Shown: positions 55,920 to 62,703 of the stretch, one piece after another
How the letters are laid out: every line of letters starts with the position of its first letter
Numbering within the stretch: the first letter of the stretch is position 1
Sequence record: OR228459.1
DNA length: 64,000 nt
Direction: 5' to 3' (one strand)
Translations under genes and position numbers: made by a program
Notes under the pieces: generated by a model
Told to the model about the DNA's origin: nothing
Databases searched by the model: none
The model's input: the letters and a program-made list of their open reading frames with translations, nothing else

Positions 55920-55968
55920 TATAAATATCTTAGTATGAAATCAATAAAATAGATTTACAAGGTATTTA
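55920..55968. promoter_or_regulatory. Face-to-face late promoters
   Basis: TATAAATA on plus (55920-55927) and TAAATA on minus (55963-55968). Confidence 0.55.
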
Positions 55969-56924
55969 TGATGAAAACTAAAACTCAAAACTTTATAGAA
56001 AAATCACAAAAGATACATGGGAGATTATATGACTATACCAAAGTTGTTTATGAAAATGCTAAAAGTAAAGTATTGATAGGATGCAAAAAACACGGATATT
56101 ATTATATAACACCCAATAAACATTTAAATGGGGCGGGTTGTCAGTCTTGTTCAAAAGAAAATAGAGTTAAATTGAAGACTAAATCTAAAAAAGATTTCGT
56201 AAATGATGCCAACATAAAACATGAACAAAAATATGATTACAGTTTAGTATCTGAAAATATTAAAAGAAGTGATCGTGTTGAGATAATTTGTGCCAAACAT
56301 GGAATATTTGAACAAACTGCACAAAATCATTTACAAGGTCAAGGTTGTCCACAATGTGGTTTAAAAACGAGAATTTCTAAACGAACTTTAAGTTCTGAAG
56401 AATTTATAAATCGTGCATCATCATTACATGACAATTTTTATGATTATTCAAAAACAATATATACTGGAATGTATAATGAAATAGAAGTTATATGTCCAAA
56501 TCATGGGAATTATCATATTCTTCCAGTAAAGCACTTACATCGTAAACAAGGTTGTCCAGAATGTTCGAAAGTAATGACTAAATCAAAAGCCGTAATTGAA
56601 ATTTGTAAGTTTTTTGATTCTAATGGGATACGCTACATTGAAGAATATAAAATCAACGAATGTAGAAATATTCACCCGTTGCCTTTTGATTTTTATCTAA
56701 TAGATTATGATATACTTATTGAATATGATGGAATACAACATTTTAAACCTATAGAATATTTTGGTGGACAACAAGGATTAGATGAACAGCAATATAATGA
56801 TAATATAAAAAATGAATATTGTAAAAGTACAGATAAGATTCTACTTAGAATAAGGTATGATGAAAACTATCTTGAAAAAATAAAAGAGTTTCTTGATTCT
56901 TGGGACAAACAGCAAAAAGTGTGA
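55968..56924 (+). mobile_element. Putative free-standing (homing-type) endonuclease: three CxxHG...GCxxC zinc-ribbon repeats plus DUF559/Vsr-like PD-(D/E)xK domain
   Basis: Three YDY...C..HG...H...GC..C repeats; LPFDFY...LIEYDG.QHF; very low GC and TTA-rich codons unlike neighbours. Confidence 0.8.
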
Positions 56925-56930
56925 TATAAT
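56900..56930 (+). promoter_or_regulatory. Early-type promoter, copy 5, overlapping the endonuclease stop codon
   Basis: TTGGGACAAACAGCAAAAAGTGTGATATAAT; no protein gene follows. Confidence 0.85.
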
Positions 56931-56936
56931 ATAGAT

Positions 56937-57388
56937 ACAACTCAGTGTGGATGTGAAAGCATACAAATCAAACCTGATTCACTCGAAAATGTAGAGGACA
57001 GATGAGCAGACCACACGTGCGAAGTGCAAATGAGACCCGTTAGGAGATGGCATAGTTAGTACCACCCACGGCAATGCGGCACTATAAACAAGCGTGTTAA
57101 GCAGATTGACGCTTGCTAGATAGACATATGAGGGACGACCTTACCACATTGCTAAGGGAGTTCAATTTAAGGCTGGCTTTAGATCCGTCTTGAATTTGAA
57201 CAACATTAAGATTCGATTGTATGGATTTTAATGTATGCGTACTAAGACTACGACCGTTGCACATGACCGTGATAGAGAGAAACAGAGCAACCCGCTTTCG
57301 TTCTGACTTGTTCAGAAATTCACGATACAATAATTCCGATGCTATCAGCGTCAAGCAATATTCAGATCCTTAATTGGGTCTTTTTTAT
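56937..57388 (+). ncRNA. Candidate large structured non-coding RNA (~450 nt), family not recognised
   Basis: Strong promoter, ~43% GC by hand count, at least ten stems including GNRA loops and long-range helices, ends in hairpin plus T6, no plausible long ORF. Confidence 0.65.
57364..57388 (+). terminator. Intrinsic terminator closing the ncRNA candidate
   Basis: AGATCC-TTAATT-GGGTCT-TTTTTATT. Confidence 0.65.
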
Positions 57389-57392
57389 TGTC

Positions 57393-57570
57393 TTCATTCC
57401 CCGATGGGGGGATGAAATTGCCTCAACAAATCTCGTCAAGATATAAAAGTACAAATAATAAAATTCAATCATTAAAATGAATTGAAATTATGAATAACGA
57501 ATGAAATGAGTTATTCATAATTGAAAATTCTTAGACAATCGAAGATTGGCTAATCAACATAAATGATTAG
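57393..57570. repeat. Array of inverted repeats in AT-rich DNA
   Basis: TTCATTCCCC/GGGGGATGAA; TTCAAT/ATTGAA; perfect 13-bp AATTATGAATAAC/GTTATTCATAATT; CAATC-GAA-GATTG; CTAATCA/TGATTAG. Confidence 0.85.
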
Positions 57571-57582
57571 AAATTTAGATAC

Positions 57583-57616
57583 AAAAAAAACCAGCAATAA
57601 ATGCTGGTTAGTTTTT
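57583..57616. terminator. Bidirectional terminator
   Basis: A-tract-AACCAGCA-ATAAA-TGCTGGTT followed by T-rich sequence. Confidence 0.75.
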
Positions 57617-57778
57617 ATTTTCTTTTGAAACTTTTTTGTTATATGCACGAACCAGAAGATCCCTTTCATTTGTTGGCATATTAAGTAGCATCTCATAGGA
57701 AGTGTTAGTGATATAGACAGATATTTCCATTAGAGCCGCTTTGATCTCTTTAACATTCAGTTCCATATCACTAAGCAC
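57608..57778 (-). CDS. Unannotated 56-aa ORF, T4 gp51-position; frame extends to 57826 and may be reached by -1 frameshift
   Basis: GTG-LSDMELNVKEIKAALMEISVYITNTSYEMLLNMPTNERDLLVRAYNKKVSKENKN; below the ORF track cutoff. Confidence 0.7.
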   Translation of the reverse strand: MLSDMELNVKEIKAALMEISVYITNTSYEMLLNMPTNERDLLVRAYNKKVSKENKN

Positions 57779-57783
57779 TTGTC

Positions 57784-58659
57784 TTATTTCTTCTGGTTTG
57801 GCAATGAGAAGCTGAATCCGAAAAAATTAGATGGATCATAACGTAGTTTGTCAATTTCCCATTGATGGTGACACTCAGAGCATTCAACATCCATTTTATG
57901 ACTAATACCAATTTCTTGTAACTCATCTGAAGTTTCACGTACTTCTTTAAGTGTATTTTTTGGTAAAGAACTTACCCATTCCGTGATAAATTCATCTTCA
58001 TTAACGATTTCACCATCAGGGGTTTCAATTTTATCAATACTTTTAACAATCATGTCAAAGTTCAATTGTGTCATTGCTTCAAACACTTCAGCAAACATTT
58101 TCTTCTTCTCTTCAAGAATTTCTTCTTCATCACCTTCCATAAAGTCAATCATTTCTGCTTTCTTTTGTTCTTGAAACATACGTTGACCGAAATCACTGTA
58201 TTCTTCCCAAGTATAAGGTTTAAAGTACACTTTAAGACCATTTGAAAGTTCAACTATTGGTTGTTTTTCAAAATATGTCATAGTGTCTAGAAGATTTTGT
58301 AGATTACGGTGGAACGCACCTTCATGACCGCATTCAGGGCAAGTAGTTTGAATTTCATAATCTTCTTCTTTGGAAGCTACTTTAATAGCGATCATTAATT
58401 GTTCTACGTCATTAACAAAAAGTTTACCTGCGTCATTAACACCGGGAACACAGTTCTCAATCACTTTAATTATTGCATCACCACCAATTAGTGCATCTGG
58501 TGTATTAAGCATAATTTCATCACGTGCAGAACGTGCACATACTCCTAACTTAATACTTTCTAGTACTTCTTTATCGTACTTAATTACATTGTTACTTGAA
58601 AGTTTAACAAAGATTTCTTCAATCTTAGTATATTTCGATAGTGGGTTCATTTTACTCAT
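57784..58659 (-). CDS. gp26: Baseplate hub assembly protein (T4 gp26-like)
   Basis: NPL.KY, RDEI.L.TPDAL..G......CVP, DV..L..AI..AS, CP.CG and C..C.H zinc motifs, D..NFF near the end. Confidence 0.75.
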   Translation of the reverse strand: MSKMNPLSKYTKIEEIFVKLSSNNVIKYDKEVLESIKLGVCARSARDEIMLNTPDALIGGDAIIKVIENCVPGVNDAGKLFVNDVEQLMIAIKVASKEEDYEIQTTCPECGHEGAFHRNLQNLLDTMTYFEKQPIVELSNGLKVYFKPYTWEEYSDFGQRMFQEQKKAEMIDFMEGDEEEILEEKKKMFAEVFEAMTQLNFDMIVKSIDKIETPDGEIVNEDEFITEWVSSLPKNTLKEVRETSDELQEIGISHKMDVECSECHHQWEIDKLRYDPSNFFGFSFSLPNQKK

Positions 58660-58674
58660 AAGGACTCCATATAA

Positions 58675-58702
58675 TAAATAATTCTATATAATTTTATTTA
58701 TA
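58675..58702. promoter_or_regulatory. Overlapping divergent late promoters
   Basis: TAAATA on plus (58675-58680) and TATAAATA on minus (58695-58702). Confidence 0.65.
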
Positions 58703-58712
58703 AGGAATGTAT

Positions 58713-60941
58713 ATGGCAATTGATAACAGTTATGTCTTGACGCAAATACTTCAAGAACAAACAAAAGCAAATGACCATTTATCAACCATGCGTGAACTAT
58801 TGGCAGATAGTTTAAAAATACAACAGAAACAGTCCAAAAAAGGAAATAATGGCTCCGGTGATAACGGAAGTAGTGATGATTCTAGTGGAAGCGGTGGTGG
58901 TAGTGGTGGAGATAGACGCCGAAGAGGTGGAAGACGAGATCCACAACCAAACTCTAAAAAACTATTTAAGCAATTATTCGGTGAAATGAAAAATTTCACA
59001 AGAACCACACTTGGTAATAGTGCCACTGCATCAAACGTAGTAGGCTCTCTAGGGACTAGCTTAGGATCTTTGGGTAGTTCCCTTAAAATGATCCCCGGCC
59101 CCGTAGGAGCGGCAGCAACAGCGTTCACTGCTATTGTTGATGTTGGTATGAAAGTCTATGATTACATGAATGAACAACTTAACATGTATAACCAATTAAA
59201 CAGTGCCGGGTTAACACTTAGGGATGGTATGTTAACTGCTCGTGCTGCTTCATCTAAGTCTTTTATGAGTTTAAATGAATTTAACGAAGCAATTCAACGT
59301 AACAGTACAACAATTGCTGCTATGGATGGTCAATACGGTGATGGTGTTGTGCATTTTGCTGATTTAATGAATTCTGTACAACAATTACAGCAAGTTAATG
59401 GTCTTTATGGTGTATCCCAACAACAATTAGCAGACATTACGGCTAAAAACTTTAAATTCCAAAAACTATATGAATCACAGAACGCCTTAAGAAGTATTAA
59501 TCAGTCTCAAAGTACTTCGGAATTTGTAAACCAAATGACATATCTAAGTAAAACTGTTGGTAAATCAGTAGATGAATTATTAGGTAAATTTGATTCAATG
59601 GGTGAAACACTTGATAGTACTGTAACACAGTTTGCAATGACTGATAATTGGGGATTTGACCCAGATAAAGCCGCAGAAGTGACAAAAACTATGAATAGTG
59701 TATATTCGAGCATGGGTGAAACTGGACAAATTCTACAAAAAATTAATGCTTCTAGAATTTCATTATTCCAATTACCTGATGAATATAATAACCAGTTTAT
59801 GCAAGGTTATGCAGATATGATGGAAAGTTTGCAACGATCTGGAGTTACTGATGCTAAAGTTGTTCGTGAAACAATGGCAAAATACGTCAAAGAGCATGAA
59901 GAACAATTGAGATTGGAATTAATTGCACAACAACGATCTGGAAATGTTCAAGCAGCAGCACTATTAACTCAAATACGAAACCAAGAAAAATTATTCAATG
60001 ATAGTAACACCACAACCAATGCACAATTAGAACAGTACACAAATAATTTTAATATGTGGATTAGTAAAACATTTACTCAACCATTTAACGAAATGTATAC
60101 TAAAATGCAGTTGGGAGCTATGAAGTACTTAAGTGACCTAGCTGATCGTTCTGATGGAGCTTTTGATTTTCTTGCTAATATTGTCAAAGATGGTTATATG
60201 TATTTTAATTCATCAATGTCTGGTATGTTTGGTGTTTTATTGGATATTCCAGCAGAGTTGAGTAAAATAATTTTGGGTGACCAATATGATAAGATAAAAG
60301 GTGCTTTTGATAATATGATGGGGGATATTATTCAAATTCCTGCCAGAATTGGTTCCCTAATATGGGATTGGTTAACTGGTAGTGATATGGATAAATCAAA
60401 AGAGCAACTTCAAGGTACAATTCATAATGTATTTTCTGATTTTAATAATTTTTGGGACAAACTCTCCAATGTTAAATTAAACGCAGATGATATTAAGAAA
60501 CGCATGAAGGATGTTTTCGATAGCGTTAAAAAATCTCTAACTGGATGGTGGGATACCGCTAAAAGTTGGTTCAGTAGTGATGATCCAATTCCAAAAGAGG
60601 CACAAAAACAAGGAAAAAACACTCCACCAACAGCGTTGATAAATACAAATGCTACACAGGCACAGCAAACAGTTGTTGCATCAAATAAACCGCAACAACC
60701 ACCAGTACTAGCGGAACCACCGCAGTCCAAGCCTGAACGTATTTCTGAAGAAGCTAAAAAATCCGAAGAGAAAAGCCAACAACCACAAGTACAAGCTCCA
60801 TTATTCAATTATGATGAAGCTATGCTTGCTCAATTAAAAGCAATATCCAGTGCATTGGATGCAACTAATAGTGGCAATCAGCAAGTGGCACAGCTTCTTC
60901 GTCAAATTTCCGAAAATACTGAAGTAGGAAGACAAACTTAA
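58713..60941 (+). CDS. Tape-measure-like helical protein
   Basis: ~742 aa, predominantly helical, S/G/Q-rich, W/F-spaced C-terminal repeats, next to the gp26-like gene. Start placed at ATG 58713 after AAGGA. Confidence 0.5.
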   Translation: MAIDNSYVLTQILQEQTKANDHLSTMRELLADSLKIQQKQSKKGNNGSGDNGSSDDSSGSGGGSGGDRRRRGGRRDPQPNSKKLFKQLFGEMKNFTRTTLGNSATASNVVGSLGTSLGSLGSSLKMIPGPVGAAATAFTAIVDVGMKVYDYMNEQLNMYNQLNSAGLTLRDGMLTARAASSKSFMSLNEFNEAIQRNSTTIAAMDGQYGDGVVHFADLMNSVQQLQQVNGLYGVSQQQLADITAKNFKFQKLYESQNALRSINQSQSTSEFVNQMTYLSKTVGKSVDELLGKFDSMGETLDSTVTQFAMTDNWGFDPDKAAEVTKTMNSVYSSMGETGQILQKINASRISLFQLPDEYNNQFMQGYADMMESLQRSGVTDAKVVRETMAKYVKEHEEQLRLELIAQQRSGNVQAAALLTQIRNQEKLFNDSNTTTNAQLEQYTNNFNMWISKTFTQPFNEMYTKMQLGAMKYLSDLADRSDGAFDFLANIVKDGYMYFNSSMSGMFGVLLDIPAELSKIILGDQYDKIKGAFDNMMGDIIQIPARIGSLIWDWLTGSDMDKSKEQLQGTIHNVFSDFNNFWDKLSNVKLNADDIKKRMKDVFDSVKKSLTGWWDTAKSWFSSDDPIPKEAQKQGKNTPPTALINTNATQAQQTVVASNKPQQPPVLAEPPQSKPERISEEAKKSEEKSQQPQVQAPLFNYDEAMLAQLKAISSALDATNSGNQQVAQLLRQISENTEVGRQT

Positions 60942-60957
60942 TTGGAGACTTATATTA

Positions 60958-62703
60958 ATGAGTTGGAGAAGACAGATGACAACTGCGAGGTCGAAAGTAT
61001 CTACCTCCAGTATAGAACAAAATAAAGCCAGTACTGCTAAAAGTACTGGTTCTAAATCTAACTATGCTTCGTACTTACCAGTTGTTTATACTGGTTTGTC
61101 AAACCGCACAGATAGATATCGTCAATATGAACAAATGGATCAAGACCCTGAAATAAGAACATCACTAGATATTATTGCAGACTTTTGTACTCAAAGTACT
61201 GAAGATTTTGGTCTACCATTTAAAATTAGATATAAAGATAAAATAGGTGATTCAGAAGTAACAACTTTAGAAGATCGTTTGGAATCGTGGGCTGAACAAA
61301 ACGATTTTAAAACCAGAATTTATGAAATTGTTCGTGGTCTACTAAAATACGGAGATCAGTTCTTTGTACGTGACCCAGAAACAATGGAATGGATTTGGGT
61401 AAACCCTGCAAACGTTGAAGGTGTTTTTGTTAACGAAGAAACAGGTAAAAATCCAGTAGCTTATTTTATCCGGGATATTTCTTTTAATATGCGTGATAAA
61501 GTAATGTCAAACTTGCAAATTGGTTTTGATAAAATGGCATATCCGGGATCATTACCTAATGCATTGAGTGGTTCTGCTAGTCAATTCGGTGGAATGGGTG
61601 GTGGTTATGCTAATGCTGGGAATGCACAAAGTGCTGATCCGTTTAGTATGGCTGCTGGTCGTAAAGATGTTCTTCCTGTAGCGGCAGAACACGTAGTTCA
61701 CCTAACACTAAATACAGGACAAGATCCAGTGTGGCCTTTTGGTACTAGTATTCTTGAATATGTCTTTAAAGTTTATAAACAAAAGGAACTTCTAGAAGAT
61801 AGTATCATCATCTATCGTGTACAACGTGCTCCAGAACGCCGTGTATTTAAAATTGATGTTGGTGAAATGCAAACTCACCAAGCAATGGCATATGTTGAAA
61901 GATTTAAAAATGAAATCCACCAGCGTCGTATACCTTCTAATAAAGGTGGTAGTACTTCATTGATGGATGCAGCTTATAACCCATTAAGTATTTTAGAAGA
62001 CTATTTCTTCCCTCAATCTTCGGAAGGTCGTGGTAGTTCAGTAGAAACTCTACCGGGTGGTGATAACTTGGGTCAAATTGACGACTTGCGTTATTTTAAC
62101 AATAAATTGATTCGTGGTCTACAAATTCCAGCTTCATATCTACCACAGGGGCCAGATGATGGCGGTGTGGCTTTATTTGGAGATGGTGCAACCCAAGCAA
62201 TGACCAGTGAATTGCGTTTTAACAACCAATGTATGCGTTATCAGCGTTTAATCGCCAAAGTTTTCGATATGGAATTTAAACGTTATATGGTTAAGAATGG
62301 TTATAGTATTAGTGCTTCATCTTTTGAAGTAATCTTTAATCCACCAATTAACTTCGCTTCATATCGTAAAGCAGAATTGGATGCAAAACTAATTAGTACT
62401 TACATGTCGCTAGACGGACTTCCATATATTGCTAAACAAACAATTCTCAAGAAAATGGGCTTTGAACAAAGTGATATTGTTGAGAACGAACAAAACTGGC
62501 TCATGGAAAATCCTGATGCATTATCATCAGCACAGGGTGGTGAACAGGCAGGATTGAAATCGGTCGGCATCGATGCTCCTAATGATCCGGGAATGGATTT
62601 AGGTATGGATGAAGAAGGTAATATGGAAAGTGCTGATAAAGAATTCCAAGATATGGTTCAAAACGATGATTTTAACCCTAATAATTTAGGCAATTCTTTC
62701 TAA
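60958..62703 (+). CDS. gp20: Portal vertex protein (T4 gp20-like)
   Basis: MDQDPEI..SLDII, LLED...IYR..RAPERRVF.IDVG.M, EDYFFP...GRG..V.TLPGG.NLG.I.D..YF..KL. Confidence 0.95.
   Translation: MSWRRQMTTARSKVSTSSIEQNKASTAKSTGSKSNYASYLPVVYTGLSNRTDRYRQYEQMDQDPEIRTSLDIIADFCTQSTEDFGLPFKIRYKDKIGDSEVTTLEDRLESWAEQNDFKTRIYEIVRGLLKYGDQFFVRDPETMEWIWVNPANVEGVFVNEETGKNPVAYFIRDISFNMRDKVMSNLQIGFDKMAYPGSLPNALSGSASQFGGMGGGYANAGNAQSADPFSMAAGRKDVLPVAAEHVVHLTLNTGQDPVWPFGTSILEYVFKVYKQKELLEDSIIIYRVQRAPERRVFKIDVGEMQTHQAMAYVERFKNEIHQRRIPSNKGGSTSLMDAAYNPLSILEDYFFPQSSEGRGSSVETLPGGDNLGQIDDLRYFNNKLIRGLQIPASYLPQGPDDGGVALFGDGATQAMTSELRFNNQCMRYQRLIAKVFDMEFKRYMVKNGYSISASSFEVIFNPPINFASYRKAELDAKLISTYMSLDGLPYIAKQTILKKMGFEQSDIVENEQNWLMENPDALSSAQGGEQAGLKSVGIDAPNDPGMDLGMDEEGNMESADKEFQDMVQNDDFNPNNLGNSF

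Follow-up and report, generated by a model that had tools for sequence, protein, structure and literature searches.

A giant Klebsiella phage, fENko-Kae01, and about 90 relatives probably use a programmed -1 ribosomal slip to make a short and a long version of one baseplate-hub assembly protein, the pair that phage T4 encodes as two separate genes (gp26 and gp51), although there is as yet no direct evidence for a transframe protein. The finding bears on why T4 is cited as the exception to the tail-assembly frameshift of long-tailed phages. No description of it was found in the literature searched or in 12 GenBank annotations, and the Kae01 paper does not mention a frameshift.

The proposed frameshift site and its surroundings

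The sequence analysed (the window) is a stretch of 64,000 nucleotides from record OR228459.1, belonging to the Rak2-like jumbo myophage fENko-Kae01. The relevant features are as follows.

57784-58659, minus strand: 0-frame gene (ENKO_279c), a gp26/gp51-family baseplate hub assembly protein of 291 aa.
57820-57826, minus strand: slippery heptamer T_TTT_TTC (U_UUU_UUC), in register with the 0 frame (AAT TTT TTC = N F F).
57608-57826, minus strand: -1 frame ORF of 72 codons plus TAA, encoding the gp51-like C-terminal helical extension; the predicted transframe product is 350 aa (278 residues + 72).
57764-57778, minus strand: internal GTG (57778-57776) and ATG (57766-57764) of the -1 ORF.
57790-57811, minus strand: weak 5-bp hairpin (CUUCU/AGAAG), 8 nt after the heptamer.
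57583-57609, minus strand: intrinsic terminator (8-bp stem, then T8) that overlaps the stop of the -1 ORF, ends the transcription unit and is bidirectional in form.
58665-58668, minus strand: GGAG Shine-Dalgarno sequence, 5 nt before the ATG of the gp26-like gene.
58695-58702, minus strand: TATAAATA, 36 nt upstream of the ATG.
58707-60941, plus strand: divergent neighbour, a 744-aa virion protein, the putative tape measure/gp29 analogue.
60958-62703, plus strand: T4-type portal protein (gp20; Pfam Portal_T4, E 1.9e-115).

The earlier note, which proposed a -1 frameshift joining a gp26-like gene to a hidden gp51-like ORF, is correct in its observation. The 0 frame reads YDPSNFF, then GFSFSLPNQKK and a stop (0-frame peptide YDPSNFFGFSFSLPNQK), so that the heptamer lies 11 codons before the stop. 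The -1 frame reads ATC TAA TTT TTT CGG, with a TAA directly before the T-run, and is then open (FFRIQLLIAKPEEI...KENKN) to the TAA at 57610-57608. The note counted 73 codons; the count from the first TTT is 72. The only start codons inside the -1 ORF are the GTG at codon 16 and the ATG at codon 20, followed by three further ATGs from codon 32. No GGAG-like Shine-Dalgarno sequence precedes either of the first two, which are the starts used by gene callers and by some GenBank annotations of relatives for a separate small protein of 52-56 aa.

Chance is excluded in two ways. Within the window, ORFs of at least 100 aa hold 95 in-frame X_XXY_YYZ heptamers, whose -1 frame stays open for a median of 5 codons, and this is the only one open for 60 or more. 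Secondly, the feature is invariant across relatives.

A hairpin similar to that of the terminator, CCAGCA...TGCTGG, follows the -1 stop in EJP2 and Hallingskeid and lies a few bases further down in 121Q. A search of Rfam found no known family, only sub-threshold hits on the terminator. The sequence TATAAATA, which appears to correspond to the T4 late-promoter consensus, is no more than a lead, since the window holds 5 copies against 8.9 expected.

The 0-frame protein matches the Pfam family T4_baseplate (PF12322) over residues 16-280 (E 2e-29; 103.3 bits against a cutoff of 24.5) and phrog_150 ‘baseplate hub’, and the top Foldseek hits in BFVD are T4-like hub assembly proteins. It holds a four-cysteine site (C107/C110/C260/C263), in which C260 is invariant and the other three are at least 90% conserved in 64 sequences; all four are invariant in a 7-sequence alignment. 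The AlphaFold model has a pLDDT of 89.8, but residues 279-291 (FF plus the 0-frame tail) fall below 50, and this tail is predicted to be disordered. A profile search of the whole Kae01 genome found only one member of the family, whereas the controls found both paralogs in T4 and in L094 (an uncultured phage locus with a short and a long copy, see below). ENKO_371 was a weak HMM hit (E 0.002) but is phrog_1383, so it is not a second paralog.

Conservation of the heptamer and the -1 ORF

All 72 distinct sequence contexts, drawn from 12 GenBank phages and 79 analysable IMG/VR loci with protein identity down to 27%, carry an in-frame X_XXY_YYZ heptamer at this spot: TTTTTTC in 38, AAATTTT in 30 and TTTTTTT in 4. 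The variants thus keep the slippery pattern, and all three belong to the H_HH.U_UU.Y class, listed among the most efficient -1 motifs in E. coli (PMC4066793). The 12 GenBank phages, from Klebsiella, Escherichia, Erwinia, Pectobacterium, Cronobacter, Xanthomonas, Agrobacterium, Vibrio and Pseudomonas hosts and with gp26-like identity down to 30%, all keep TTTTTTC; in each, the 0-frame stop lies 1-11 codons on and the -1 frame is open for 71-78 codons. FF is also a conserved protein motif, which explains part of the T-richness. However, in the 42 distinct TTTTTTY contexts the preceding codon encodes 8 different amino acids yet always ends in T, against a background frequency of 38% for T at third positions.

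The -1 peptide is conserved from its first residues (FFRxxLL..PEEI), upstream of any start codon. PA5oct has no ATG, GTG or TTG in 75 codons and in RaK2 the first start is at codon 32, so independent initiation cannot explain the ORF in many lineages. The argument is weaker for Kae01 itself because of its internal GTG and ATG, although the 15-19 codons before them are conserved as protein in all relatives.

The evidence from RNA structure is inconclusive. The weak hairpin in Kae01 (-3.2 kcal/mol) is no better than shuffles, with z = +1.2 for the Kae01 clade, and is not a convincing stimulator; nor do Kae01 and its close relatives have an upstream Shine-Dalgarno-like element. In the AAATTTT clade, a hairpin of roughly 13 bp lies 5 nt downstream, with 84% of cells paired against 22-57% when slid, and 5 pairs with compensatory changes. 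The RNAalifold consensus for this clade was minimal, at 7 pairs, and the fuller hairpin had to be specified by hand and its covariation is modest. In Atu_ph07, the downstream structure reaches -33 kcal/mol (z -6.2).

In-frame long forms and the relationship to T4 gp51

The description of the hidden ORF in the earlier note as gp51-like holds up, with moderate rather than decisive support. The ORF matches phrog_18291 (E 2.6e-28). A protein search with the 72-aa piece gave only 11 truncated products, because gene callers rarely call this ORF whole, but a profile of 62 such pieces finds 625 proteins. About 20 of the top 150 hits are T4_baseplate proteins of 319-351 aa that carry the piece in frame at their C-terminus, and their junction has a single F and no heptamer. 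In four of four such loci, from uncultured phages (L094, L102, L103 and L105; profile E about 1e-15), a short paralog sits immediately upstream, and L105 has the same portal/tape-measure-like/gp46-47 synteny as Kae01. Three of the four short paralogs have lost the heptamer.

Alignment of the -1 pieces with a single T4 gp51 sequence was not significant (E 0.13) and family profiles were needed. Full-length long forms against the gp51 family give E 3.6e-5 and are colinear to the end. Profile comparison restricted to the extension aligns it over 56 columns with the 48-residue C-terminal extension that T4 gp51 has and gp26 lacks (P 4.7e-5, against 0.3 for the reversed control). T4 gp26 (208 aa) ends 3 residues after the FF motif, as the 0-frame product does, and gp51 (249 aa) continues with its extension, which is about 14 residues shorter. 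T4 uses two divergent genes and no frameshift, and its gp26 encodes FF as TTC TTT. T4 gp26 and gp51 group together in the tree, so the T4 duplication appears to be independent of the one in the environmental short/long lineages.

A model for two products from one gene

In the favoured model, most ribosomes terminate normally to give the 291-aa short form, the T4_baseplate domain followed by a disordered 11-residue tail. A minority slip back one base at U_UUU_UUC, with the two tRNA-Phe re-pairing on UUU UUU, and read 70 more codons in the -1 frame to give a 350-aa long form carrying a helical C-terminal extension. The short form would correspond to T4 gp26 and the long form to T4 gp51, the ‘hub assembly catalyst’, both listed in T4 reviews as hub assembly chaperones (PMC3004832), and frameshifting would fix their ratio from a single mRNA. 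That slippage occurs, that it is ribosomal and a minority event, and what the two products do in hub and tape-measure assembly are inferences.

The earlier note drew an equivalence with the tail assembly chaperones G and GT of phage lambda, made by a -1 frameshift at G_GGA_AAG that is conserved in long-tailed phages (Xu, Hendrix & Duda 2004; reviewed in PMC5009743). Every comparative test that it named came out in favour of its interpretation, but the equivalence is an analogy of logic, not homology. In both systems a -1 tandem-slippage site near the 3' end of a morphogenesis gene yields (in Kae01, by inference) a major short product and a minor C-terminally extended one, and the gene is adjacent to the putative tape measure gene. 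However, the Kae01 protein has no Pfam tail-assembly-chaperone hit, no sequence hit in the PDB and no PDB fold match (best Foldseek match E 0.15), and its heptamer is U/A-rich. The gene is divergent from the tape-measure-like gene rather than between the tube and tape measure genes, the tube and sheath genes lying about 55 kb away, and its role is probably in hub assembly. The identity of the 744-aa neighbour is itself not firm: it matches phrog_14121 ‘virion structural protein’, was detected by LC-MS/MS according to the GenBank note, and tape-measure similarity was noted by the RaK2 annotators, but its only similarity to T4 gp29 is a weak C-terminal BLASTP match (E 0.002). To judge from annotation notes alone, the gp26-like protein carries no mass-spectrometry note in the Kae01 and PA5oct records, but its homolog is labelled ‘structural protein’ in CBB.

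Alternative explanations

It is possible, but unlikely, that there are two separate genes, with the small ORF translated on its own from GTG 57778 or ATG 57766, or by termination-reinitiation, and the heptamer a by-product of the conserved FF motif in an AT-rich genome. Several GenBank records of relatives annotate a separate gene, and gene callers produce products of 52-98 aa. 121Q (TAATG) and XbC2 have an ATG that overlaps or closely follows the 0-frame stop, about a quarter of database representatives have the -1 frame open from an ATG 11-15 codons upstream, and FF is conserved as protein even in T4 gp26. Independent or coupled initiation may therefore add to or replace frameshifting in some lineages. 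Against this as a general explanation are the absence of early start codons in PA5oct and RaK2, the conservation as protein of the 15-30 residues upstream of the first start, the T in 42 of 42 preceding codons, the natural in-frame fusions, the lack of a good Shine-Dalgarno sequence at either Kae01 start, and the fact that in the AAATTTT clade the second F exists only after the shift.

Transcriptional slippage, in which RNA polymerase adds one U in the T-run, would give the same protein outcome but also seems improbable. Homopolymer runs can cause RNA polymerase stuttering, and U7 runs are avoided in E. coli genes partly for that reason (PMC4066793). However, what is conserved is the X_XXY_YYZ register rather than the run length, the AAATTTT clade having only five T's, and a run of 6 is probably short for efficient slippage. 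The hairpin conserved in that clade is at the spacing typical of ribosomal stimulators. A homopolymer sequencing or assembly error, or a recent pseudogene, can be all but dismissed, since the same frame structure occurs in 72 distinct contexts from independent isolates and metagenomes sequenced by many groups, including variants without a long homopolymer.

Implications for T4-related phages

It is about as likely as not that T4 is no true exception to the conserved tail-assembly frameshift. On this view, the short/long chaperone pair is general in the T4 superfamily, is made by -1 frameshifting from a single gp26/gp51-family gene in jumbo relatives (Rak2-like, PA5oct-like, Atu_ph07-like and many uncultured phages), and has been resolved into two genes by duplication at least twice, once in the T4 lineage and once in an environmental lineage.

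The finding corrects the annotation of at least 76 phage genomes, where the extension is either called as an orphan small ORF or missed. In a very large group of T4-related jumbo phages, the gp26-like and gp51-like proteins are probably the 0-frame and transframe products of one gene, and this offers a testable model for what gp26 and gp51 do, as a fixed-ratio chaperone pair that shares one domain. It also gives a case where frameshifting and gene duplication are alternative solutions to the same requirement, and the tree suggests that this was resolved more than once.

Genomic context and confirmation of the slippery heptamer

The region is 100% identical to Klebsiella phage fENko-Kae01 (OR228459.1), a 360-kb Rak2-like jumbo myophage, with the window corresponding to record positions 124001-188000. 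In that record the gene at 57784-58659 (-) is annotated as a hypothetical ‘putative baseplate protein’ (ENKO_279c), whilst the downstream -1 ORF is not annotated at all. Reading of the minus strand and translation in all frames confirmed each element of the arrangement that had been put forward in the earlier note as a probable -1 programmed frameshift. The features of the locus are as follows.

57784-58659 (-), 0-frame gp26-like gene, with a GGAG 5 nt before its ATG and ending ...YDPSNFF GFSFSLPNQKK and then a stop
57826-57820 (-), heptamer T_TTT_TTC in X_XXY_YYZ register
57610-57608 (-), TAA that closes the -1 frame, which has a TAA directly before the T-run and is then open for 72 codons
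57609-57589 (-), stem of an intrinsic terminator, followed by T8, overlapping the stop of the -1 ORF; the hairpin reads as a terminator on both strands
58707-60941 (+), divergent 744-aa virion protein, putative tape measure protein
56925-57607, about 680 bp between ENKO_277 and the terminator with no convincing ORF, in which only a 50-aa CDS (ENKO_278) is annotated
55968-56924 (+), 318-aa ORF (ENKO_277), annotated as hypothetical

ORFs of at least 100 aa in the window contain 95 in-frame heptamers of this type. Their -1 frame stays open for a median of 5 codons, and only the one described here is open for 60 or more.

The 0-frame product matches Pfam T4_baseplate (PF12322, the family containing T4 gp26 and gp51) over residues 16-280, and the family domain therefore ends exactly at the FF encoded by the heptamer. 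The -1 piece matches phrog_18291, a family of small proteins of unknown function. The neighbours on one side are the divergent 744-aa virion protein and the T4-type portal. The 744-aa protein is a tape measure candidate that has an N-terminal Gly/Ser/Asp/Arg-rich low-complexity stretch and a Gln/Pro-rich C-terminal region, but only the latter shows a weak colinear match to the C-terminus of T4 gp29 (E 0.002). On the other side, ENKO_277 lies between an endonuclease gene and the frameshift locus and has three or four repeats of a roughly 65-residue module, each containing GC..C motifs (for example ...GAGCQSCSKEN, ...GQGCPQCGLK, ...KQGCPECSK), followed by a distinct C-terminal domain.

Conservation of the heptamer and the -1 ORF

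A tblastn search finds the -1 piece in 76 phage records, with the match covering at least 80% of the query in every record. Twelve diverged representatives were compared: Kae01, EJP2, Hallingskeid, 121Q, RaK2, CBB, GAP32, XbC2, XaC1, Agrobacterium Atu_ph07, Vibrio 2.275.O and Pseudomonas PA5oct, whose gp26-like identity to Kae01 falls as low as 30%. In all 12, the nucleotide heptamer TTTTTTC is present and in register, the 0 frame stops 1-11 codons later, with tails that are not conserved in length, and the -1 frame runs for 71-78 codons. The -1 frame is closed 0-3 codons upstream in 11 of the 12, and 14 codons upstream in EJP2. The -1 peptide is conserved from its first residues (FFRxxLL..PEEI), yet PA5oct has no ATG, GTG or TTG anywhere in its 75 codons, and in RaK2 the first start is at codon 32. 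None of the 12 records annotates a joined CDS; they list either a short separate ORF or nothing. In many database representatives (P0107, P0110 and others) the conserved (E/Q)-W motif of the 0 frame (GAA/CAA TGG) creates an ATG in the -1 frame 11-15 codons upstream of the heptamer. In about a quarter of representative small ORFs the -1 frame is open from that ATG, so that gene callers report proteins of 87-98 aa, but in Kae01, where the equivalent QW codons are at about 57858-57862, three stop codons intervene.

The same arrangement was found in metagenomic viral contigs. A search of IMG/VR returned 80 related loci with 27-86% identity. All 79 analysable loci have an in-frame X_XXY_YYZ heptamer 1-11 codons before the 0-frame stop: TTTTTTC in 39, AAATTTT in 36 and TTTTTTT in 4. 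The -1 ORFs are 72-93 codons long, two being cut short by contig ends. Removal of duplicates and addition of the GenBank loci leaves 72 distinct contexts. In the 42 TTTTTTY contexts the preceding codon encodes N, S, D, H, R, Y, A or T, but always ends in T, against a background frequency of T at third positions of 38%, or 70% for two-fold codons. The first Phe codon is always TTT, against 72% in the background. In the AAATTTT clade the 0-frame product ends ...VNFS, and the FF motif is completed only by the shifted reading (NF|FIRSL), which a protein-level constraint on the 0 frame cannot explain. All three variants fall within H_HH.U_UU.Y, which Sharma et al. list among the most efficient -1 motifs in E. 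coli (PMC4066793).

Natural in-frame fusions

A profile built from 62 of the -1 pieces was searched against 1.84 billion representative proteins and gave 625 hits at E of 1e-3 or better. Most of these are small called ORFs. However, about 20 of the top 150 are proteins of 319-351 aa with the match at their extreme C-terminus, and the eight that were scanned all carry T4_baseplate N-terminally. Their junction reads ...DLDxSxxFRxKLIxxxEEEI, with one F and no slippery site.

In four of four such loci with enough flanking sequence, a short T4_baseplate paralogue (276-312 aa) lies immediately upstream. One of these loci, L105, has the same neighbourhood as Kae01: portal, a 775-aa protein, the divergent hub genes and gp46/47-like genes. 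Three of the four short paralogues have lost the heptamer. The fourth, on L094 (Logan SRR5080639 contig, 1680-1710), still carries an in-register TCT TTT TTC just before its stop, but its -1 frame closes after three codons (FFQ, then a stop), and the long gene starts at an ATG that overlaps the stop (TAATG). This looks like a relic slip site left behind after the duplication. These lineages therefore encode both a short and a long form, which suggests that both are required. The -1 ORF of Kae01 is the C-terminal domain of the long form.

Relation to T4 gp26 and gp51

T4 gp26 ends three residues after FF (...KEFFELL), and that FF is encoded TTC TTT, which is not slippery. In T4 gp51 the Pfam domain ends at residue 201 and a further 48 residues follow. 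Profile comparison of the long forms against 92 gp51 homologues gives a colinear alignment through the extension (E 3.6e-5). Restricted to the extensions alone, P is 4.7e-5 over 56 columns, against 0.3 for a reversed control, whilst the -1 pieces alone against the gp51 family give P 0.007. The -1 ORF is thus regarded as the counterpart of the gp51-specific extension, with moderate support. Almost all gp51 homologues carry a second precomputed Pfam family, PF28602.1, alongside PF12322, and this may be a model of the gp51 C-terminal extension. The Pfam-A copy searched returned no such hit for T4 gp51, and so appears to lack this family, and the frameshift-type small ORFs and the long forms show no PF28602 hit on record.

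The complete Kae01 genome (the window plus loci L095-L101) contains only one family member, although the same HMMs recover both paralogues in T4 and in L094. A maximum-likelihood tree groups T4 gp26 with the gp51 family (support 100/99) and nests the environmental short and long genes inside the frameshift-type clade (96/89). This indicates at least two independent duplications, although the root is at the midpoint only, so the direction of change for T4 is open.

RNA signals and predicted structure

Kae01 and its close relatives have no convincing stimulator, there being only a 5-bp hairpin of -3.2 kcal/mol, with z above 0. Other clades do have structure. In the AAATTTT clade a hairpin of about 13 bp starts 5 nt after the heptamer, with MFE z-scores that reach -5. 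On 28 sequences 84% of cells are paired, against 22-57% when the partners are slid, five pairs show compensatory changes, and the covariation score was reached by only 7 of 500 shuffles. In Agrobacterium phage Atu_ph07 (locus L010, 1316-1402) a very stable predicted structure (-33.4 kcal/mol, z -6.2) begins 2 nt after the heptamer, in which a long outer stem encloses an 11-bp GC-rich hairpin; it is far stronger than anything in the enterobacterial relatives. Both arms of these hairpins lie in coding sequence, so this evidence is supportive only. Rfam has no match.

The natural long form from L094 models at pLDDT 90.9, and its extension is predicted to form four helices. The Kae01 0-frame product models at 89.8, except for residues 279-291, the FF plus the 0-frame tail, which fall below 50. 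That fits a tail with no structural role. Foldseek finds no PDB relative, and in BFVD it finds only T4-like hub assembly proteins.

Alternative explanations

Independent initiation of the -1 ORF, on its own, fails in lineages without start codons and does not explain the nucleotide-level conservation, but it may still contribute in Kae01 or 121Q. Transcriptional slippage is unlikely, because what is conserved is the register rather than the run length, and the AAATTTT clade has only five T's. Sequencing error is excluded by the 72 independent contexts.

Mechanism and function

The recoding signature is strongly supported by comparative evidence, and from it tandem -1 slippage of two tRNA-Phe on U_UUU_UUC can be inferred, although not yet tested at the protein level. 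This would give a minority 350-aa product, with junction ...SNFF|RIQLL, beside the 291-aa product. Frameshifting of the G-T type is already known, and the Atkins review names T4 as the exception to it (PMC5009743); no mention of the frameshift described here was found in the literature searched, in the Kae01 paper or in a 2026 jumbo-phage review.

Three observations fit a low-abundance long form. T4 reviews list gp26 and gp51 as hub assembly chaperones, with gp51 absent from the particle (PMC3004832), and database names call gp51 a ‘hub assembly catalyst’. The Kae01 and PA5oct records also carry no mass-spectrometry note for this protein, although their neighbours do. However, many clearly non-structural proteins of Kae01 (DNA polymerase, ligase, RNR, RecA-like and others) are flagged ‘identified with LC-MS/MS’, which fits the remark in the Kae01 paper that the phage was purified only by ultrafiltration. 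The absence of ENKO_279c from that list is therefore weak evidence about whether it is in the virion, and the CBB homologue, by contrast, is labelled structural. Although the family, fold and gene position do not match those of lambda G/GT, the logic of the inferred minority long form beside a short one does (PMC5009743).
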